Shown here piece by piece: positions 1-26,527 of a stretch of DNA of 64,000 nt. Under the pieces are notes generated by a model. The model worked only from the letters and a program-made list of their open reading frames with translations, was not told the origin of the DNA and searched no databases. The DNA comes from Vitrella brassicaformis CCMP3155 (Eukaryota; Protista; Chromerida). The position numbers and the translations under genes were made by a program. Position 1 is the first letter of the stretch; each line of letters begins with the position of its first letter. The stretch covers positions 248,001 to 312,000 of the forward strand of contig CDMY01000603.1 in assembly GCA_001179505.1 (NCBI GenBank), given 5' to 3'.

Positions 1-3000
1 AGCCGCCGCGCCAACACCGCGAGTGAGCACTACACGACTCTCTTCGATGTGCTGGCGCAGCTGAACGGCAGCAGCAGTAGCAGCGGTAGCGGCGCCCCGA
101 ATGATAGTCAAAAGGGTGGGAAGGGTGTAGGTGGTGGCGGTGCTGGTGGTGGTGGTGGTGGTGGCGAGTTGGGGGTGGACGCGGCGATGCAGGCGCTCAT
201 GCGGAAGTGGAAGCCGTATGACGGCATCAAGCCCATCAACGTGTCCGACGAGGGGCCGCTGCGGGAGTTTGCATTCATGCTGCTGAAGGCGTCTGAGAGC
301 ATACCGTACCCTGACCAGGTCAGTCACGCCACGCCACGCCACGCATGGTCCTCCCGCCCCCCTTCTCCACCCATTCATATGTATGCGTCTCTTGTGTGTG
401 TTGTCAGATAGCGATTCTTCTCAACGAGATGGCGGCCGACGCGGCGGCGCACCAGGTGCCCACGCCCCAGCAGCTGCCCGCCGACGAGAAGGAGAGGAAG
501 GAGATGATGTTCATGTCCGACCTCCGCCGCCTCCAGTGGTGCGCCCTTAAGGACCAGATGCTCCTCCTCATGCTGCTGCACGCACGGTGCCAGCCGGAGG
601 ACGCCGACCCACCGCGGCAGTGGTCGCAGCGCACCTACCTGCAGCACCGGGAGCTGGTCTGCACGCCCCTGGTGCACGCCTACCAGCAGGCCATGCAGCC
701 CAAGATCGAGGCCGCCGCCCAGATTTGGGCGAATGACTTCTGTGAGGGCGTGGCGCAGATCGACCGGATTCTGAGGGTCATGGGGCACGAGGCGGAGAGC
801 CTCGAGGCGATGCCGCTCAAGCGGAAGCTGCGGTGTCTCACGGGGTTCTTCCGCGACTGCGTCATCAACCCCGATTGGATGCCGCTGTGCGGGGACCTGC
901 ACTTCGACAGCAAGGAGGCCATCGATGAGATCGTCTTCATCGTCAAGGTCGTGCTGCTGACCGCTCTGCAGATGGACCTGGTGAGCGGACATGCATGCCG
1001 CCCCCGGACTGTCTGTCCCGCCTCCATGTGCCCTCTGTGTCTGTGTGTGTGTGTATGGCGTTGTCAGGATGGCACGGACGGTTCGTTCTTCCTGCCGAGC
1101 GCCATCCCCCGCCGCCCTTCCCTCGACGTCAAGGCGGCCATGCTCACACACGTGCCACCCGCACCCGAGGGCCAGCCAGGACCGTCGGGGAGCTCCTCGT
1201 CCTCGGCATCGGCATCGGCAGGCCCCTCCCCCGAAGGCGGCAGCAGCAGCAGCAGCAAGAGTGGCCTCACCGTGTCGATCCTCTTCCCTCACGCCGCGGC
1301 CCCCATAATGAAGGACTACCTCGACAGCAACCCGCCTCCATTCTTCCTCATTCTCGGGGGCATCCTCGCGACCCTCTTCGCCGTGCCCCGCAAGGGCAAC
1401 GAGGAGACCATCCGCAACGTCCTGCGTGAGGGGCTCAAGGGCATGCTCGACACCCAGATGACCGACTTCACCTCCGCCGCCATGGATGCTTCTCTCATCA
1501 CTCTGACCAAGCTGCTGTGGGAGCGGCTGGACGTGCCGAAGTCCGACCAGGCTTTGGCTCAGTCCCTGGTGCACGGTGAGTACCAGCTGCTGGCCCACAT
1601 GAAGGAGGGCGAGCGCACGGACGCCGACATCACCGCGGCCATGGACCGCATCATGTCGGTGTCGTGGAAGCCGTCCACTGGCGAGACGGAGGTGGAGAGG
1701 CGGCTGAATGAGCGGTTTGAGCAGACCAAAGGCGGCGTTGCGCCCGTTGACGTAGAGGAGATCGTCGAGCATGAGCTGACGGTGTTTTCGTCATTCGCTG
1801 AGGAGGTCAACAAGAACAAGGCCATCGCCGCACTGGCCGAGCGGGAGGGCCGCCAGCAGAAAGGCAAACCGATGCGCGAGAGGGAGGATGAGTTCTGCAG
1901 GTGAGTGTGTGTGTGTGTGTGTGTGACACACTGAGATAGATGCATCCCTCTCTCCGTATGTGCGCATCTCTCTGTGTGTGTGTGCAGCCGTCTGGTTCAC
2001 CTGGAGCAGCAGAGCATCAAGTCCGAGGTAGTTTTCGCCCTCTTTGCCCTCGCCAAGGCCCAGCCGCCCGACGCCACGCCAGCCCACCAGTGGTCCCCCG
2101 CCACCCACATGGCCAAGCGCACCATCGCCATGCAGCCCGTCTCAGAGGCCTACCATGCCGCCGTCGAGTCGCACCTGGTCCCCGCCACCAAAGACCTTAA
2201 CGCCACGCGCAAGACGGCCTACCTCGAGATGGTGGGGTGGACTGAGGCCGACATGCGCAAGAGAACCGAGGCCGAGAAGGAGGACGCGCTGGTGAGCTTC
2301 TTCCGCGACTGCCTCACCAATTGTGGTCAGGAGTGCAAGGACAAGCTGGACTTCAACACGCACACGCCGTGGGCGATTGTGACGTCGCTGCGGGCACTGC
2401 ACCATGACATACTCACCAAGGTACCTTCCTTGTGGGCTGGAGGGGCTGAGGAGTCATGTGCCTCATGTGTTGCCGCCGTGTGTGTGTGTGGCTGAAAGGT
2501 CAATGCGACGAGCGAGTACTGCTTCCAGCACTCTGACCCAGCAGACGACCAGGGCTACCAAGTAAAGGCGGACACAGACAGACAGACAGACACCTTTTGT
2601 CCACACGTCACCACACCATATATATGTCTCTGTCTGCGTGTCTGTGCAGCGCATCAAGACGTTGTTAGGTTTCCAGGACGACAACCGCCACGTGCGCACT
2701 TACAGGGTTAAGGAGCATCTTGTCACCGTCAAGGGCAGGCTGCTTGAGCGGCTCGAGCACCAAGCGGCCAACTTCGCCTCTCCCGACGCCAACGTCAACG
2801 ACAAGAAGCTCGAGGCGCTCAAGCGCAAGATCATCAAATACAAAGCCGAGCTCCACACCCTCATCAAGGACAGAGGTTCGTCCGTCGCGTGACTCACCCA
2901 CACCCTCCCTCCCTCAGGCCAACCTTGGTGTGTCTGTGCGCATGGATGTCTGCAGATGCGGCAGCGAAGCGGTTGAGCGGCGAGGCAGCGTCCGACGAGG

Positions 3001-13120: not shown

Positions 13121-16100
13121 TCATTCATATCGGTCAAAATAGCCGATGACCGGCGCCTCCATGGATGCGTCAGAGGGGTGGCCTGCAGCACACACAGGTC
13201 AGGTCACGTCACAGCACACACACATGAGTGAGTGATTTCAATATGCACAGATCTCCTTCCTCCCCACCGGTGACCCACCACCTACCGTGGTGAGCAATGA
13301 TGCCGTCAGGTCGAATAAGGCAGAATGCGGCAGGCTGTCCGGCGTTGAAGGGCGAGAGGTTGAACTTGTACCTCTGCAGCACCTCCCCCTCGACGTCCCA
13401 CGCCAGCTGGAGATCAACGCTGCACTCCTGCGGCTCAAACGACGCCTTGAACTTCTTCTTGATCGCATTCAGAATGGTGCTCATCCGACCAACGCCCTCA
13501 ACCTACACTCAACTCACACACAATGCGCAGCGCACGTGGTGGCGACGTGACGACAAGCATGCATCCCGCCCATCCCGCCATGTGTTCGTTCCTCGTTAAT
13601 TACCATCGGCACGAGGGTGGCCCTGCCGGTGCTGAAGACCAGCAGCACTTGCAGCTCCTGGCCCGGCCGCTGGTGTTCGGGCCTCTGGGGGTCGCTGCCG
13701 TTGCTCGTCGTGGGGGACGACTGCGCATGGTGGGTGCTCGTGTGGCTGTTGGCCCCACCGCCCCCTGCCGCAGCTGTCCTCGGGCGAGAGGGCGTGATGG
13801 GCGAGGAGGGCTGCGTCTTGGGGGTGGCGTCGTCGCGGCAGGCCTCGTAGTACTTGGTCTGCAGCTTCACGCCCAGCTTGAGCAGGTCGTGCAACACACC
13901 GGACACCTCTATCTCTGCAGCCAGGCACACACATACACACACAAAGGGACGTGTGTGTTTGGCTGGTCTGCAATGTGTGCTGTGTGTGGTGGTGGTGGTG
14001 GTGTTTCGCGCACCGTCCTGCTCGATGGGGTCTGGGAGGCCGATCGGCGGGATGTAGCAGGTGCCGCCAAACCATGAGCGCTTGGGCCGGCTGGCCGACG
14101 AGAGGGAGGACGTGCCGAGCTCCTCGCCCTTGGCCGGCACACGCAGCGCCAGCAGCAGGGTGTGCGACGGACGGGCTATCGCCTGACAAGACAACACACG
14201 AACGATGGATGGATGCGCAGATGCGATGACTCTGTGCGGCGTACCTGGTGCAGCCTGACGAATCTGATCTGGTTGTCGTCGACCAGCGCGAGCTTGGCGT
14301 CAGGAGCCCGTGACCCCGGTGGCACGCTGCCCTTGATCTGCTCCCGACCAACACACCGCCTGAACACAACGGGGAGAGAGAGAGAGGGACAAGCAATTGT
14401 CACCATTGAGTGTGCAGATGAGCTGCTATGCTGCTGTGTTGTGCTTGCCTGTGTATTGGGTACTGCCTGTCCTTCTGCAGTGCGACCAGTGACGGCCCCA
14501 GCCACTGGGAGTTGGCCGTCGGCAGGATGGTGCGCATGTTCCACAGCAGCCCCCCACCGTTCATCGCATCCATGTAGCTCTCCAGCGACGTCACTGCGCC
14601 ATACATACCCCATAGACACACACACGGACAGACAGACAGACAGACAGACATGACACACAGGTGGATGGATGGACGCACTGCGGTGCCGGTGGGTCGTTCG
14701 CTGGCTCACTCACTCTTTCTCCGTTGATGCCGTTCGGTGACGTATGTGTCGAGCAGCGACCAGTCGGCCTGGTTCGCCACGACCGTTGCAAGCTTCCACG
14801 CCAGGTTAGAGGCATCCTGACGGACGGAAGAGATATGTACGATGGATTCATTGTGTTGTGGGTGCGTGTGTGGGTAGGGCCATCCACCTCACTCACCTGT
14901 ATGCCTGTGTTGATGCCCTCGTCGAAGAATGGCGAGTGCATCTGTGCGGCGTCTCCGCACATGAACACACGTCCCCATGAGTAGGTGGGCTGGAATATGT
15001 CGCACATCGGCACACCTGCAAGACACACAAGGCACATGGGGTCCCTCCCTCCCTCCCTCTCACACACTCACATGTGGCCCAGTCGACCTCCTCAATCACG
15101 CTGCCAGGTAACGCCTGCACACACACACACACACACACAACACACACCCATCCCTTGGCTTGTGCGTCNNNNNNNNNNNNNNNNNNNNNNNNNNNNNNNN
15201 NNNNNNNNNNNNNNNNNNNNNNNNNNNNNNNNNNNNNNNNNNNNNNNNNNNNNNNNNNNNNNNNNNNNNNNNNNNNNNNNNNNNNNNNNNNNNNNNNNNN
15301 NNNNNNNNNNNNNNNNNNNNNNNNNNNNNNNNNNNNNNNNNNNNNNNNNNNNNNNNNNNNNNNNNNNNNNNNNNNNNNNNNNNNNNNNNNNNNNNNNNNN
15401 NNNNNNNNNNNNNNNNNNNNNNNNNNNNNNNNNNNNNNNNNNNNNNNNNNNNNNNNNNNNNNNNNNNNGCATTGGCAATAGAGTGCAGCTCCCCCCTCGT
15501 AGGGCTCAGGTGATGGTAGCACACGATGTCCATCAGAAAGGAGGTCTCCGTAAGCAGGGGTCTGATGCGGCGGCCGGCAACGACCCGCCACTTGTTGCCG
15601 CCGCCCAGCGGCACACACGACACGACCTCTCGGTTCCTGCCCAGCAGCAGCTGCGCGCTCTTCTTGTTGGCGGGCACCGGCCACTGCGCGCGGATGTCGG
15701 CCACGAGGAACTCCATCTCACCGGGGGTGCCGCTGGGCTGGTTAGGGTGGTGCACTCGGGGAGGCGCGAATTTCTGGTGAGTGGGTGGCATTGCATTGCA
15801 CGAGAGAGAGAGCAAGAGAAGACAGACCAGAATGTGCGTCACGGCGTTGACTGACTGACCTTCTTGATGGTCGAGTCGACTCCATCGCACCCCACAAGGA
15901 ACACGCCGGTGAAGGCGCATTTCTTGGCGTTGAACTTGTTGCGGAAGATGTCGCGGGTGCCTTTGGGCTGTGAGGGGTCGGGTGGGGGTCGCGGCCGGAC
16001 GTTGACGGTGATGGTCTCGTCGGGATGCTCCCCGATGTGGATGCTGTCGATCTCGACGTTGCGCTTGATGCACTGCTGGTAGCCCAGACGATTGATGCGG

Positions 16101-18700: not shown

Positions 18701-21700
18701 TTATTCTGTGCCTTTCCAGTGGAGCCGTGCCAGCACTGCAGTGCCCTTGGCCAGCTGATCGTAGGCCTCTTTAGCACGAGAGGCGGGGAAGGTCTGCACG
18801 GGCAGGAAGGAGCAGGTCGACGGCGACAGCTCGGCCAGGACACGCAGCGCTTCGTCGAGCCGACGATCCTTTGTCCACCGCCCACGCAGCGATGGCGGGA
18901 TCTCGCTCACCTGGGAAAACTGCACACAACACAACACACGCAATCAACGAATGCCATGCACGCACCAACCGTATGTATCGTCTGGTCTGGTTGTTGTTGG
19001 TGTGCCCTGCCCGTGCTTCCACACCGACCTTGATTTGTATGTGCGATCGGTGCAGCCGCAGCGAGCCGAGGTCCAGCTCAGCAAAGCCGGCGAAGCCCTT
19101 GGAGTACCACGACCCCACCACCACCCGCCCGTTGTTGCGCGTCACCCTCAGCGCAGCGTCCAGCGCTGTCGGCCGCCCACTCACCTCTATCACACAGTCG
19201 AAGGGGCTGGGTGGGTCGTGGGCAGAAGAAGGGGCCAGCACCGCAGACGCACCGGCCTCTCTCGCGAGACGGCGCCTTTGCTCGGAGGGGTCGATGGCCG
19301 TCACGTGCCAGCGTTGGCGAGCCAGCAGATAGGTCACCAGCAGGCCTATCAGGCCCTGGCCAAACACCGCCACCTGCTCACCTGCAAGACATCCACACAC
19401 ACACCCATATAGATGCCNNNNNNNNNNNNNNNNNNNNNNNNNNNNNNNNNNNNNNNNNNNNNNNNNNNNNNNNNNNNNNNNNNNNNNNNNNNNNNNNNNN
19501 NNNNNNNNNNNNNNNNNNNNNNNNNNNNNNNNNNNNNNNNNNNNNNNNNNNNNNNNNNNNNNNNNNNNNNNNNNNNNNNNNNNNNNNNNNNNNNNNNNNN
19601 NNNNNNNNNNNNNNNNNNNNNNNNNNNNNNNNNNNNNNNNNNNNNNNNNNNNNNNNNNNNNNNNNNNNNNNNNNNNNNNNNNNNNNNNNNNNNNNNNNNN
19701 NNNNNNNNNNNNNNNNNGGGCAGGAAGGAGCAGGTCGACGGCGACAGCTCGGCCAGGACACGCAGCGCTTCGTCGAGCCGACGATCCTTTGTCCACCGCC
19801 CACGCAGCGATGGCGGGATCTCGCTCACCTGGGAAAACTGCACACAACACAACACACGCAATCAACGAATGCACCCACCCACCGTATCGTCTGGCCTGGC
19901 TGTTGTTGGTGTGCCCTGCCCGTGCCGTGCTTCCACACCTACCTTGACTTGTATGTGCGATCGGTGCAGCCGCAGCGAGCCGAGGTCCAGCTCAGCAAAG
20001 CCGGCGAAGCCCTTGGAGTACCACGACCCCACCACCACCCGCCCGTTGTTGCGCGTCACCCTCAGCGCAGCGTCCAGCGCTGTCGGCCGCCCACTCACCT
20101 CTATCACACAGTCGAAGGGGCTGGGTGGGTCGTGGGCAGAAGAAGGGGCCAGCACCGCAGACGCACCGGCCTCTCTGGCGAGACGGCGCCTTTGCTCGGA
20201 GGGGTCGATGGCCGTCACGTGCCAGCGTTGGCGAGCCAGCAGATAGGTCACCAGCAGGCCTATCAGGCCCTGGCCAAACACCGCCACCTGCTCACCTGCA
20301 AGACATCCACACACACACCCATATAGATGCCAGGACCACCCTCTAGTCTCAATAGATCTCTCTCCTCATTGCCCACCCACCTGGCACTGGATTGGCATCC
20401 TGCAGTAGCGAGAGTGCGGTCTCCATTGCCGGCAGGAAGATGGCGTCGTCCACGGGCACGTCAGCGGGCAGGCGTGTGCACGACGACAGCGGCACGATCG
20501 CCCTCTCCTCGTGAGAGTGAAACGCAAAGACCTTCTGGCCCAGCCACGACAAGCGGTCCACGCCAGAGCCACACCTGACGCATTTGCCGGCGAGGGAGTA
20601 GCCGTATGTGAGTGGATATCTGAGCGGTGTGGCCGTCATGCCCTCGATGGATGTGTCCAGCGGCTCGCCGTCGATGAAGTCGCCCTGGTAGACCTTGAGC
20701 TCCGTCCCGCTGCTGATCAACGAGTAGGCCGACTCCACCTCCACCTGCAGGCAGGCAGCCATCGCATCCACGCACCAAATGTGTGGTGGTGGAGTGCAAT
20801 GTGTTAGTGAGTTATGGGTTTGTGGGTGGCGGGCGGGGCTTACGTACGTGTCCTGGCGGCACTTTGATGGCTTGGGGCCGGTCTCTGATCTCTACTCGCG
20901 AGGGGCCGCTGAAGACCACCTGGCGGCTGGGAAAGGCAGCCGCCACATCTGAGTACACACACACACACACACACACATGGGTTCACAGGCGTGTGAGCGT
21001 CTGTCTATCCATCACATACAGACATATCGGCGGGCAGTGTGCCGAGAATGTCGACGTTTTTGACCTTCAGTGTGGAGTGTTTGTCGGTGTGGTGCTTGAC
21101 CCATGCTGGCAGGTCCCAGTGGGGCAGCAGCTGGCAGCTCCTGAGCGCACCCATGGCCAGGAACGACATCAGACACTGCCACATGTACTGATGGTCCGCG
21201 CACGGCACCGACCACTCCGACGCACCTAAACGAATCACACACACACCCACATGGCTGTCCATCCATCCATCCATCCAGGTGACCTCACCCTGCATCATGA
21301 TTTGCCCTTTTCGCGATTCGATGGCCCTGAGCAGCTTGGAGGGGTCGGTCGATTGGCCCTCTCTCCTCAGGTGCTCGTGGTACAGACTCACCACCTGCCG
21401 GTCGGTCGGCAGCGCCCCGCCGCCGAAGAACGGCGGGTCAAATGTCGTCCTGCCGGCGTAGGTAATCGGCATGTACAAGAGCGCCCCTGCACACACACAC
21501 ACACACACTCGTGCATATGTGTAGACAGCCGTCTGTGGCAGGGCAGGGCAGGGTCCCTACACACCTGGTGCGATCCTAGTGAGGTGGTTGATGAGGACGT
21601 CCTGGTCCATCAGGTCGGCGAAGGAGCAGCCCAAGACGACGTCGAAGCCGTGCTGCCCATCAGCCGTGTCCAGAAGGTCGCCCTCCACCAGCACCAGGTA

Positions 21701-23072
21701 TATACCGCCGCCGCCCCGGTCGGCCTTGCGGTAGACGCGCTCCCGAGGATGGAAGCCGAAGCTCTCATCGACCTCCTCGAACCCCATCAGCTCGGTGGCA
21801 CTCTCGCGGTTGGCCTGACAGACAGACACAGCCAGAGAGCATAGCATGCCAGTGTCTGTCGCTTGCAGGCTTGTGTGTGGTCTCTCTCGTTGTCTGTCTG
21901 ACCTGCATGACGGCGCGTGAGGTGTCGATGGCCACGTAGACGAGTGCGTCGCCCCGGCCCTTCCACTGATGCCCCTCCCATAGGCCCAGCACCCTCACCA
22001 GCATGCCCAGCCTCCCCGCCCCCACATCCAGCACCCTCACGCCGCAATCCCTCGGCTCCTTCTCGCGGAACCTCGCCACGAAGGCCTCCCACGTGTCTTC
22101 ATTGAAGGCGTGGCAGTCGATGGCCTTTTTGGCGGAGAGGTAAGCGAGCGGGTCGAACTGGAAGGTGGATTGGGGCGGGGCGCACTTGATGAGTGACGCT
22201 AGGGACTGCTCGAGGGTGGATGGAGAGGTGGGGAGAGGGGCCAGGGACACGCCTGAAACAACAGGACGATGTGCGTTTGTCTGTCTGTCCGAGTGGGTGG
22301 TTACCTTTGATGGCATGTGAGATGGCCTGCACGCTGCTGTCGATGACTTCAGGGTCATCAATCACCACCAGCTCCTTCTCCCCCCCTCCTAGCTCCTTCC
22401 ACGCGTCCCGCAGCCTCTCATACTGAGGCCCCCTGCCGCCCTCGCCGATAAACGCCTCACCCCCCACCATTGGCACGCCCCCCCTCTCCGGCATCACAAT
22501 GCGCGACACCATCGAAGATGGCAAACACCGTGAGTAGAAGAGCATGTGCCCTGGGGAGGTCCACCGCAGGAGGTCCCTGATCCACCTCGGCGTGGCGCCT
22601 TCGCTCGCCATGTGCTGCCACCCTGTCGGCGTAGTGCTTTCCTTCCGGCCGTCCCTGTCGTCTGTCTGCCCGCTGACTCGCGCAGTCTCCTTGTTGAGGA
22701 GGTATGCCGTGAGCTCCTTCTCGATCGCCGCCCAGCCGCCCCTCTCCTTGCTGTCGAGACACCGCCGCACAATGGCCTTCACCTCAGCCGACGCGATCAG
22801 GTCCACATTGAAGGCGATCGGTGGCAGGAGGGCGGCAGCTGATTGGGGGGTGTCCAGCGGGCCCTCAAATGAGGCGGACGTGGCGAGTGGGTCGGGGCCG
22901 TCGGAGACGGTGATGGTGAGCGACGAGAGGGGCTCCGGAGGGCTCTGTCGGTCTGCTGGCGGAAGACTCAGATATGCGGAACGGACTCTCTCCCACAGAT
23001 AGCGTGACAACTGCAGCCAGCAACAGAGGAGGAAACGCATTCATGGAGGGGAGGGAATGCAATCGCGCCTGT

Positions 23073-23103
<31 letters not shown>

Positions 23104-24309
23104 GCCTTTGCTCGCTGACTGACCATTTCCAGCGTCCAGTTCTCCCCCTTCATGGCTTCGATCTCCTCCAAGTTGCGGTAGGCCAGCCCCCCCACCGCCT
23201 CACCCAGCAAAGCCTGACACATCCCAATATCGACCAGGAAGTTCTCGGGCTCGCGCAGCCGGGGGCCCTTGAAGGTCATGTCCACCAGCAGCGTCGCGCC
23301 GTGCAGGTCCTCCGCCCCGTCGAGCCTCCGGGCTATCATGCACCGGTCCCTCACGGTGACAGAGAAGTGGCCGAGGTGTGCGGGGGGCGGGGCGGGGTCG
23401 GTGGGGCCCTCGAAGGAGCATGACGCGATGTCCGACTCGTGAACGATGATCTTGAGGCGTTTCTTGTTTTTCGGGGGGGATGGGGGAGTTTCTGCAGCTC
23501 CGTCTTCCAGGCGTTCCGGGCGAAAGTTCACTGCCATGTCTTCCCAGAGCTTGAAGGCGATCCACTCGATGGTCGTGTTGGCTCCCTGGGTCCAAGGGGA
23601 TGTGTCGAGGTTCTGTACACATGAACATGCAAACAACGGACAGAGATGACCCTACACTGTACATGTAGCACACGTGTCGCTGACCCACCTGATTTTCGAA
23701 GGGCTTCAGCGCGTCAATCAATGCCTTTGCAAGGTCCCTTTCGTCGAGATGATGGTAGAGCCACGCCTCCACCAGAATCGTGGCGCCGTGCATTCTCTGC
23801 GCCGGGCCGAATGACTTGCCGCGGAAAGAATGCGCCAGCATGGCCGTCTCACACACTCGGGCCGGGTCTCGCTCCTCATCCCATGGGTAAGCGGGCGAAT
23901 GTGCGAAGCCGTAAAAGGAATAAGAGTCACGCAGGCCGAGGCGCATGTCGTCCACCGGATCACCTGCCTCCACCTTCGACAGCAGGTACTTGCGGAAGGC
24001 GGGCAGATTGCCAGATAACTCTGTCGCGTGCTTGCACCACTCCTTGATGCGGCAGGCCTCTTTGAGCGCTGAGCTCTTCACCAGATGACCATCTGCTCGC
24101 AGCGTGGAGGACGTCACGGACGCGGTAAGCAGGTTAACCGCCCCGTGTAAGAAGCCGTAGAAGTCGCCCTGCAAGGCGTCGCCGTGAAGGGGCCTTCTGA
24201 TGGTCAGGGTGTAGGTGCTGAAGGCGCGGGAGAGTCCCCTGGACGCCACACATCTCGGACGAACCAGCGCCGTCATTCCGTGAGTCGGCGATGAGTCAAT
24301 CGGCTCCAT
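18701..24309 (-). CDS. Multidomain fusion enzyme (~1290 aa): 3x PTPS-like T-fold + HAD-like + class I SAM methyltransferase + MDR-family NAD-dependent dehydrogenase
   Basis: Exons 24309-23689, 23612-23124, 23010-22305, 22252-21903, 21814-21565, 21486-21289, 21225-21016, 20948-20848, 20744-20381, 20295-19943, and a last exon from 19837 (completed in the duplicate copy as 18919-18701). All phases match, total 3861 nt. Motifs: AHSFRGKSFGPAQRMHGAT, FSVTVRD, YLSAKKAID, VLDVGAG, SLISSGTE, VFGQGLIG, VVGSWY. Confidence 0.85.
18800..20331. other. Near-identical ~615 bp blocks (18800-19417 and 19718-20331) flanking a 300-N gap (19418-19717); probable uncollapsed haplotypes
   Basis: Both flanks contain the same two dehydrogenase exon segments. 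Differences are intronic indels/SNPs, one synonymous change (GCG/GCC) and one I/V change. The duplication starts and ends exactly at the gap edges. Confidence 0.85.
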
Positions 24310-24415
24310 TGCCGAGAGATTTGCCTCTGTTTTGCTACCACGAGGCGGGACGAACACATTCCGGACAGGTCTAAGGCAGATCTGCGCGTTTTGCCGCCTG
24401 CGGGGTTCCAAACCC

Positions 24416-24423
24416 TGCGAGCT
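24416..24423. promoter_or_regulatory. Candidate promoter motif TGCGAGCT/AGCTCGCA (other copies at 5045, 5073, 35703, 55296, 58497)
   Basis: Perfect 8-mer found in five separate head-to-head intergenic regions. Confidence 0.45.
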
Positions 24424-24453
24424 CAGACGTGCAGTAGGGAAGTGGCCGTCCCG

Positions 24454-26527
24454 ATGGCATCAGAAGTGAACGGGCATCCATCTTCGTCAGAAAACGGCGT
24501 TGGAGGCGGCGGCGAGGTATATCTGGTGACGGGAGGGAGCGGGCTGCTGGGCCAGGCGCTCAAACGGGTCGTCGAGGCCAGCGAGGGTGGCGCAGCAAAG
24601 GGCAGCAGCAAGTGGGTATTCCTGTCGAGCAAAGATGCCGACCTGCGGTGCGCGAAAGATCTGGCGAAAGAGATGAGATGAGATGAGATGAGAAGGAATG
24701 TCATCCACTGTTCTCTGTGTGTATGTGTGTGCAGAGACTATGAGTCGTCTCGTCGTTTGTTCGACAAGCATCGACCGACGCATGTGGTGCATCTGGCCGC
24801 CAAGGTTGGCGGCCTTTTCGCAAACATGGCAGACCAGGTCAGTGAGGTCAACCAATCAACTCAGCTCCACGCCAACCTTGCACAGGCTTGTGGTTGCCAT
24901 GTGTGTGTGCCAGGTGGGGTTCTTCCGGCAGAACATGCAGATGAATGACAACATCGTCTCACTCTGTCATGACTACAAAGTTAGCACACACGCACAAACA
25001 AACAGATATCCATCCCGTTATGGACGGGCGGATCGATGGATGGATTGCGTGTTGTGTGTGTCGTGTCGTGTCGTGTCAGGTGAAGCGTGCTATCTTCTGC
25101 CTGTCGACGTGCGTCTTCCCGCCATCAGCGCCCATGCCGCTCACCGAGGACTCGCTGCAGTCAGCACAGCACAGCACAGCACACACAGAGGGCTGGGTGT
25201 GGCATGTGATGGATGTGAAGGATGGGTGGTGTGCGTGTGGTTGACTGACTTGTGACTCAGTTCCGCCCCTCCCCACCCGTCCAATGAGGGCTATGCCAAT
25301 GCCAAACGGATGCTCGAGTGCCTCGCCAGGTCACACACAAAGAAAGATAAACACACCTGCCTGACTGCCTGCCACTTCCTCTCACACACGTGTTGCTGTG
25401 TTGCAGATATTACCGTCAGCAGTACAATGACGAATTCGTCTGCATCATCCCCACCAACCTATACGGACCCAACGACAACTTCAACCTCGAGGTGGCTGGG
25501 CCTCATGGCACTTAACGCCACGGGCGCTTAAGCCACCGCATGTTGTGTGTGTGTGCCGTGTGCCGTGTGTGTGTGTGTATGTAGGAGGCGCATGTGATCC
25601 CTGCGTTGATCCACAAGTGTTACCTGGCGCAGCAGGACAACCAGCCGTTCGTCGTGAGCGGATCGGGCAAACCGCTGCGGCAGTTCCTGTACTCGGACGA
25701 CTGTGCGGTGAGGGAGCCCATCCTTAGACACACAGTGACGGAGAGATGGTTCCTTTCGTGTGTGTCGTGTGTGCAGCGGATCATTTACGAGCTGCTGCGC
25801 ACAAGTTCCGAGAAACTCACCTTCAACTCCATGATGTGTGTCGGGGACACCGGTACGTCTGTCTGTCTGCATGGGCATGGCGCACGCACACCACGGACGG
25901 ACACGGCAACATGGGCAGCTCAGCTGTTTGTCTGTCTGTCTGTCTGTCTGTGTGTCTGCCACACACTTGTCCATCAGAGCATTCGATCAAGCAGGTGGCT
26001 GACGCCATCGTGTCGGCCATGGAGTTCAAGGGCGAGGTCAAGGTGAGCAAAGCGATACAACAGCATCGATTACACGGGCGGGCGGGCGGGCGGGCGGGTA
26101 TCCTCCACATCATCCTTTGTGTGTCTCCGTCCCTCACTCCCTCTCAGTACGACACGTCAAAAGCAGACGGCGTCTACAAGAAGGTACCTAGAAGCGGACC
26201 TGCCTACCTAACGAAAGAAAGACCGAGTCTGGACCCTTTTCTTCATGTATTTATTTGTCTGTGTGTGATTGGTGTGTCGGTCGGTCAATCAGACTGCGTC
26301 CAACGCTATCCTGCGGGGGTTCATGCCCAAGGACTTCACACCCATCCCGCTCGAGGAAGGTGCGCAACCGATAGACAGACGGCAATATCATATGATGGCC
26401 GGAGGGATGGGCACGCCGACCGGAACCACCTGTGTGTGTGTCGTGTGTGTCATGGCTGCTGTCTCTCTCAGGCATCCGCCGGGCAGTGGTGTGGTTCAAG
26501 GACAACTTCGACAAGGCCAGGAGGTAG
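24454..26527 (+). CDS. GFUS: GDP-L-fucose synthase (extended SDR epimerase/reductase), multi-exon
   Basis: [112 protein letters not shown]. Confidence 0.95.

Follow-up and report, generated by a model that had tools for sequence, protein, structure and literature searches.

Why should one polypeptide carry three tandem, unequal copies of a domain that its bacterial relatives keep on separate chains? The question is raised by a minus-strand gene of the chromerid alga Vitrella brassicaformis CCMP3155, in a 64,000-nucleotide stretch (positions 248,001 to 312,000 of contig CDMY01000603.1, assembly GCA_001179505.1) that we call the window; all coordinates below count from its first letter. The gene opens with three T-fold repeats related to 6-pyruvoyltetrahydropterin synthase (PTPS) and QueD, the first of them decayed, and continues into a degenerate HAD-like linker domain, a class I S-adenosylmethionine (SAM) methyltransferase region and a medium-chain dehydrogenase/reductase (MDR) region. 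Our best explanation, held with moderate confidence, is a spliced fusion gene whose three T-folds would form a ring within the chain, ahead of these downstream domains.

Three coding pieces make up the N-terminal part of this eukaryotic gene, as read from the minus strand. Exon A (23689-24309, 207 codons, ATG at 24309-24307) encodes a 29-residue leader, repeat 1 and the N-terminal half of repeat 2; exon B (23124-23612, 163 codons) encodes the C half of repeat 2 and the N half of repeat 3; exon C (22305-23010) encodes the C half of repeat 3 (residues 1-51) and the linker domain (residues 52-235). Repeats 2 and 3 are each interrupted by a GT-AG intron, a feature absent from the earlier sequence-only reading of this DNA: intron 1 (23613-23688, 76 nt) in repeat 2 and intron 2 (23011-23123, 113 nt) in repeat 3. 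Public runs were compared over 19800-24600, and the RNA-derived run X4 provided spliced contigs. Its joints exactly skip 23613-23688 (23612 to 23689), 23011-23123 (23010 to 23124) and 22253-22304, plus five more introns downstream, and all read CT..AC on the plus strand and hence GT..AG in the direction of the gene. Contig 28 extends over 23689-24396 and continues into exon B; contig 26 spans 21026-22840, from exon C into the methyltransferase exons. Since spliced contigs bridge the joints, the gene is expressed and spliced as a single message. The ATG at 24309 is likely the start codon because a divergent plus-strand neighbour gene starts at 24454, 144 bp away, and leaves no space for an upstream coding exon.

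Every motif quoted by the sequence-only reading was found by translation at the minus-strand place it had claimed. The N half of repeat 2 (23689-23865, exon A residues 149-207) carries AHSF, FGPAQ and MHGAT, with about seven residues including VDIG deleted; its C half (23403-23612, exon B residues 1-70) carries NLD, NTTIE, HESD and SFEGP. In repeat 3 the N half (23124-23375, exon B residues 80-163) has FSVTVRD, ARRL for AHSF, LHGAT, FLVDIG, YRNLEE and NWTLE, with a five-residue deletion at the FGPAQ position, and the C half (22858-23010, exon C residues 1-51) has the helix YLWERV, LTITVSDG for ..ES.., and SFEGP. The SFEGP that ends both repeats corresponds to the family C-terminal (S/A)-(Y/F)-E-G-P; repeat 1 ends in SFYGF.

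When exon B was used in an exhaustive HMMER search, 177 relatives came up, and 64 single-domain relatives make up the family profile. This profile matched the N half of repeat 2 (exon A 151-185) at E 1.8e-14, its C half (exon B 1-72, profile positions 100-161) at 4.4e-7, and the N half of repeat 3 (exon B 79-162) at 1.5e-28. The C half of repeat 3 is weaker and in register (hhalign P 0.0033, with its score reached in 0-5 of 2000 shuffles), and BLASTP matched it to the C half of repeat 2 at 2e-4. Pfam PTPS (PF01242) matched repeat 3 above its cut-off (exon B 99-162, 2.4e-6) and repeat 2 below it (exon A 157-190, 0.019). Among solved structures the closest relative is SCO6650 from Streptomyces coelicolor (PDB 3d7j, deposited with six chains), matched by exon B 79-160 at 7e-14 with a second stretch at exon B 1-68, and by exon A 151-193 at 5.9e-8. 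A profile of the repeats also matched QueD and PTPS structures at 5e-8 to 1e-5. By these comparisons repeats 2 and 3 are certainly T-fold domains, two modules in one chain. No NCBIfam family matched any T-fold exon, and a word-index protein search with exon B gave no match. A Pfam DUF4120 match in exon A (E 0.02, below cut-off) was taken as chance.

The sequence-only reading had assigned a full set of metal and catalytic residues to the middle repeat and to it alone. That assignment proved wrong, as no repeat has the canonical zinc and catalytic set when residue equivalences are taken from an alignment of the family profile with structures of E. coli QueD. The His of AHSF corresponds to His16, the His of LHGAT to His31 and the Glu of NTTTE to Glu110, but the Ala of LHGAT takes the place of His33, the Cys27 position is occupied by the Ala of FGPAQ, and Asp70-His71 has become Asn-Tyr (repeat 2 has ENQ there, ahead of NLD). 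The C-x3-5-HGH of canonical PTPS and QueD is therefore not kept in the family, where HGH is HGA. The three zinc-ligand positions read His, His, Ala in the family consensus and in repeat 2, and repeats 1 and 3 keep the His31 equivalent alone. The Glu110 equivalent is kept in repeat 2 (NTTIE) and repeat 3 (NWTLE), and its region is deleted in repeat 1. From these equivalences the whole FGPAQ subfamily lacks a complete zinc triad or catalytic triad.

A canonical zinc-dependent PTPS or QueD site in the middle repeat, making 6-pyruvoyl- or 6-carboxy-tetrahydropterin, is accordingly very improbable, and we rejected it on residues. It would account for the Pfam PTPS matches, for the two of three His ligands and the Glu anchor that repeat 2 keeps, and for the database names of the homologues ('6-pyruvoyltetrahydropterin synthase' for the one in Chromera, '6-carboxytetrahydropterin synthase' for the bacterial genes). 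Against it stand the Ala in place of the third His, the Ala at the Cys position, the missing Asp-His pair, and a bacterial operon context of RibA/RibD, glycosyltransferase and methyltransferase genes rather than queuosine or biopterin genes.

What did hold is that the copies have decayed unequally. In the single-domain proteins 28 columns show conservation of 85% or more; about 20 of these are retained in repeat 2, 19 in repeat 3 and about 6 in repeat 1. Missing from repeat 2 is the stretch that contains the invariant VDIG Asp-Ile, still present in repeat 3; repeat 3 has Arg-Arg for the His-Ser of AHSF and no FGPAQ, both intact in repeat 2. Of the three, the middle copy comes closest to the full family signature, the losses of repeats 2 and 3 are complementary as counted in sequence columns, and there is no canonical metal site.

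Aligning the repeats to PTPS/QueD subfamilies, as the sequence-only reading had proposed, confirmed the COG0720 kinship and moved the subfamily away from the canonical one. Repeat 2 carries the FGPAQ signature before LHGAT (SFGPAQRMHGAT), and FGPAQ is typical of PTPS-IV (PMC5445326); motifs of the PTPS subfamilies are listed in PMC5041015 and PMC5445326. Judged by their signatures, the T-folds belong to the SCO6650 or 'FGPAQ' (PTPS-IV) subfamily of COG0720. All three Vitrella repeats find their best match, in sequence and in structure, in SCO6650 and its PTPS-IV kin, which share the motifs AHSF, FGPAQ, LHGAT, VDIG, YRNLD, NTTTE and ES, and have alcohol dehydrogenase and methyltransferase partners. 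The bacterial proteins differ in being single domains of 125-150 residues on separate chains, whereas Vitrella has three unequal fused copies, none of which alone keeps the complete signature. The 3d7j paper by Spoonamore and colleagues (2008) is reported to describe SCO6650 as lacking zinc and PTPS activity, which agrees with the residue pattern and speaks further against a canonical site. A link of PTPS-IV to F420 synthesis by unpublished work is stated in PMC5041015.

The bacterial single-domain gene lies between a Zn-alcohol dehydrogenase gene and genes for a GT4 glycosyltransferase and a class I methyltransferase. Nearby are genes for a RibD-family protein, RibA (GTP cyclohydrolase II), a CDP-alcohol phosphatidyltransferase and cytochrome b, and once for a creatininase-family protein. 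This operon was seen in plasmid loci of Methylosinus, Thiodictyon, Agrobacterium and Streptomyces (including L002, L003, L004 and L005), and one Streptomyces locus was without it. We take PF00925 to be the GTP cyclohydrolase II family. The described PTPS-IV neighbourhood holds RibA (PF00925, although named 'FolE2' there) and RibD (PF01872) (PMC5445326), and the plasmid loci match it. The gene content suggests an operon product that is GTP-derived, glycosylated, methylated and perhaps lipid-linked. Homologues of GT4, RibA and RibD were not found within the 64-kb window.

Two of the operon partners are present in the Vitrella gene itself, since the alcohol dehydrogenase and the methyltransferase are fused behind the T-folds. 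The operon PTPS-like protein matches the window at 2e-15. The operon methyltransferases match the methyltransferase region of homologues of the Vitrella protein (a metagenomic protein, P0082, at 2.6e-6 and the Chromera protein at 1e-4), and the equivalent region of Vitrella (21020-22252, exons D-G, end approximate) has a VLDVGAG motif and X4 joints. Its introns lie at 22253-22304, 21815-21902, about 21489-21565 and about 21223-21285; the joints are from X4, save that the intron at about 21489-21565 was read from sequence alone. The MDR region (Zn-alcohol-dehydrogenase-like; 19838-20950, X4 joints) matches Pfam ADH_zinc_N at 9.5e-12 and was hit by tblastn with bacterial operon alcohol dehydrogenases at 3e-18 and 8e-17; it continues beyond a 300-N gap at 19418-19717. 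By these matches the Vitrella gene is a eukaryotic fusion of genes that are clustered in a widespread bacterial operon.

The T-folds are separated from the methyltransferase by the linker domain (22306-22857, exon C residues 52-235), a degenerate HAD-like domain whose DxD site reads IAFNVDL and in which a TPTG motif is conserved. Pfam gave no match for the Vitrella linker domain itself; it was aligned with the algal homologues and with the metagenomic proteins P0082 and P0065, in which the corresponding region matches Pfam HAD at 1.8e-7. The HAD nucleophile site reads N-V-D in Vitrella, where the domain looks dead, D-M-D-G-V in the single-T-fold fusions, and D-I-D, E-P-D or D-T-E in other algae; some lineages may no longer have an active HAD step.

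The top matches of the exon B HMMER search are multi-repeat algal proteins. Nearest is Cvel_2635 of Chromera velia (1332 aa, UniRef A0A0G4F2G1), followed by an Emiliania huxleyi/Gephyrocapsa oceanica cluster and the metagenomic proteins P0001-P0006, P0014 and P0025. As in Vitrella, the homologues carry a HAD-like domain with TPTG, a methyltransferase and an MDR dehydrogenase downstream of the T-folds. By profile mapping the haptophyte-type proteins have three T-folds, and P0014, P0011 and P0025 have two clear T-folds and a degenerate third region of T-fold size. Full-length algal homologues with more than one copy always have three T-fold-sized units and never four. A word-index search with Chromera residues 600-1332 returned Chromera itself and three methyltransferase-dehydrogenase proteins, none from Vitrella, and an ESM Atlas feature search with P0002 returned single-domain PTPS clusters only.

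The second copy of the multi-repeat homologues is marked by AR in place of AH, by the absence of FGPAQ and by a retained FL(I/V)DI(C/G), and in a tree of N halves these AR-type copies form one clade (support 97/99). If the AHSF-type copy is called A and the AR-type copy B, the order is degenerate-A-B in Vitrella and A-B-A', intact type first, in the non-chromerid algae. Vitrella has no third copy after B, because exon C passes directly into the linker domain. In Chromera, too, A is followed by B, behind about 100 residues of no recognisable kind. One reading of these orders is a single-chain ring whose chain break differs among lineages, a natural cyclic permutation with one A|B composite site per chain, which would feed the fused methyltransferase and dehydrogenase of a widespread GTP-derived pathway; we regard it as doubtful.

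Repeat 1 (23887-24222, exon A residues 30-141) would be a degenerate T-fold. It keeps YTLTIR, GDFYG and LHGA, lacks the AH, PAQ, VDIG, NLD and NTTxE motifs, is shortened in the substrate-loop region, and at the FGPAQ position has FYG followed by a three-residue gap. A phmmer comparison of exon A residues 1-147 with 168 family proteins gave a best E of 4.6e-4 and six matches below 0.01, and every match paired exon A residues 32-78 with the extreme start of single-domain proteins, through the segments TYTLTIR, GDFYG, LHGA and L-ADG-V. The family profile scores only 2-5 bits on repeat 1, at the correct profile positions, a score reached in 1-9 of 2000-3000 shuffles; for the same 50 columns the hhalign P is 0.0013. 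Nothing was found when repeat 1 was compared directly with repeat 3 by BLASTP, or in an ESM Atlas feature search with repeat 1. In a global alignment the NLD...NTTxE substrate loop is mostly missing, and MRLGLRDS aligns with the family ..ES strand. The in-register matches show homology of the N half, by which repeat 1 is a decayed copy of the same T-fold domain.

How might three such copies work together? T-fold enzymes form their active sites between the subunits of a ring, and in a PTPS-type ring each subunit's final strand forms an antiparallel pair with the first strand of its neighbour, so that a linker of hairpin length is enough to join neighbours. We infer that the three T-folds, side by side, would build one 12-stranded barrel, as three separate SCO6650 subunits do, and that two chains would stack into a pseudo-hexamer as in the six-chain 3d7j entry. 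The copies would then be specialised. Repeat 2 retains the signature of strands 1 and 2 (AHSF, FGPAQ, HGAT) together with the anchoring Glu of NTTIE; repeat 3, without AH and FGPAQ, would supply the VDIG Asp, NL(E) and a Glu; repeat 1 would be mainly scaffold. Probably one ligand site per chain would survive, possibly composite at the interface of repeats 2 and 3. Such a site would not be of the zinc/Cys PTPS type; its conserved Glu probably holds a GTP-derived pterin- or pyrimidine-like intermediate, which the fused methyltransferase and dehydrogenase would then modify. This single-chain ring is plausible because the copy number equals the ring order, as it also does in every full-length multi-copy algal homologue, the linkers are 12-15 residues long, 3d7j has six chains, and bimodular QueF offers a precedent. 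The decay of the copies makes sense solely if unlike copies are neighbours.

Tandem T-folds have other precedents. Urate oxidase, GTP cyclohydrolase IB and fungal FOL1 (DHNA-DHNA-HPPK-DHPS) have two T-folds per chain at neighbouring ring places, and in FOL1 the tandem T-folds are fused to downstream pathway enzymes. These proteins make four-unit rings from two chains, whereas Vitrella would close a three-fold ring alone. Bimodular QueF of the V. cholerae and E. coli type also has tandem, weakly homologous T-fold modules in one chain, with catalytic residues in one module and lost from the other and an active site at the interdomain interface (PMC5372742). It differs in having two modules of a different T-fold family, in being a nitrile reductase, in forming no tunnel and in being unfused.

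Several results weigh against a ring of three within the chain. One is that P0065 and P0082 (metagenomic, about 1035 aa) have a single T-fold followed by HAD, methyltransferase and MDR. A covalent ring is therefore not required for fusion, which weakens the earlier suggestion that triplication suited fusion to large downstream domains; since single-T-fold fusions exist, the ring is an elaboration on fusion, not its precondition. Such fusions, with the same downstream domains, must oligomerise between chains, and the solved relative is itself an oligomer of separate chains. Both facts would suit an arrangement with no intramolecular ring, in which each repeat sits in its own homotypic ring, the rings are stacked, and the protein is a trimer or hexamer of chains. 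That arrangement is clearly unlikely, given the short linkers, the unequal and complementary decay that fits heterotypic neighbours better, the absence of an intact site from rings of repeat 1 alone or repeat 3 alone, and a copy number that equals the ring order in several lineages. As a side observation on single T-folds, P0071 (1736 aa) and P0165 (2949 aa) of the dinoflagellate Polarella glacialis each have one T-fold of SCO6650 type far within the chain, at 748-892 and 1949-2105, which makes theirs another architecture.

Copy order weighs on the same side. In the N-half tree a single origin of the B copy and an independent chromerid duplication fit about equally (approximately unbiased test, p 0.33 and 0.37), and the Vitrella and Chromera rows have very long branches, so the tree cannot say whether the differing orders have one origin or two.

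The remaining points against the ring concern repeat 1. Its C half (residues 78-140) has no sequence signal to the family in the profile and shuffle test, and the N-terminal 103 residues of Chromera resemble neither the family nor Vitrella repeat 1. Run on exon A with no alignment, AlphaFold was uninformative (pLDDT 37.6, all-helix, with the known repeat 2 half mis-folded). AlphaFold2 with a family alignment gave residues 30-141 a T-fold-like model (pLDDT 78.4, pTM 0.68, with pLDDT 83-93 across most core elements), which is partly circular, and because the alignment steers it we count it as compatibility and not as proof. The order of its elements is strand, strand, helix, helix, strand, the last strand poorly formed. 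It matches 3d7j in Foldseek (E 2.2e-4, TM 0.60) and in VIA (Z 9.5, 106 residues aligned, rmsd 3.9), and in VIA also matches DHNA (Z 9.7), PTPS (Z 8.8-8.9) and uricase chains. That repeat 1 adopts a T-fold, as the sequence-only reading required of three tandem repeats, is in this way supported for the N half by homology and, for the whole, compatible with a guided model; repeats 2 and 3 stand by profile. We consider a complete T-fold in repeat 1 probable, not certain.

These same results feed the view that only repeats 2 and 3 are working T-folds, repeat 1 being a decaying relic or a leader outside the ring. The two-domain unit would then assemble with other chains, for example as three chains with six T-folds, or as an open QueF-like dimer; the V. 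cholerae QueF, whose chain has two T-folds in tandem, forms a homodimer that has no tunnel (PMC5372742). The silent C half, the missing substrate loop and the Chromera N-terminus are what such a relic would leave. We nonetheless think it rather unlikely, since the N half of repeat 1 is homologous in register, its length and strand-helix order are right for a compact T-fold in the guided model, and other algal lineages (P0014, P0025) retain a T-fold-sized third unit even where it is highly degenerate. The single-chain ring is the reading that we prefer.

Some further observations concern the surroundings of the gene. The neighbour at 24454 onward (plus strand) has a first exon with a Rossmann GGSGLLG motif, of the NAD-dependent epimerase/reductase kind, and would have a short bidirectional promoter region in common with the T-fold gene. 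Intron 2 contains a (CTGC)n microsatellite of about eight units at 23040-23075 (plus strand), at which the genomic contigs of three runs break; the skipped repeat is 23062-23110. Over 20050-22677 there are many single-base differences between the window and the contigs of all four runs, including X4; some are in part of the depth only, and none is listed within exon A. Such a pattern is consistent with two alleles, or with differences between strains, in the methyltransferase and MDR exons. On either side of the 300-N gap (19418-19717) are blocks 18863-19417 and 19781-20331, which are 96.4% identical, and the last MDR exons of the T-fold gene appear twice around it, probably as an artefact of a scaffold join or haplotig. 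A second 300-N run is at 15169-15468.

A literature search found no description of a three-module T-fold or PTPS-type protein or of this algal fusion, and nothing on SCO6650, on PTPS in Vitrella or on the bacterial operon in the searchable literature. The novelty is modest: tandem T-folds with partitioned residues are already known, and a three-copy PTPS-type chain fused to operon enzymes appears to be new. If the ring is true, these three PTPS-type copies would be the first polypeptide to supply a whole three-fold ring, and the algal lineages, with their different decayed copies, are a natural experiment on which half-sites are needed. Through this gene a eukaryotic megaenzyme is also linked with the bacterial operon of SCO6650, a protein with a solved structure but no assigned function; the operon occurs in Streptomyces, rhizobia, methanotrophs and purple sulfur bacteria. 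By its make-up the fusion tells which of the operon genes act together, namely those for the PTPS-like protein, the methyltransferase, the dehydrogenase and a HAD step, and so aids the search for the product.

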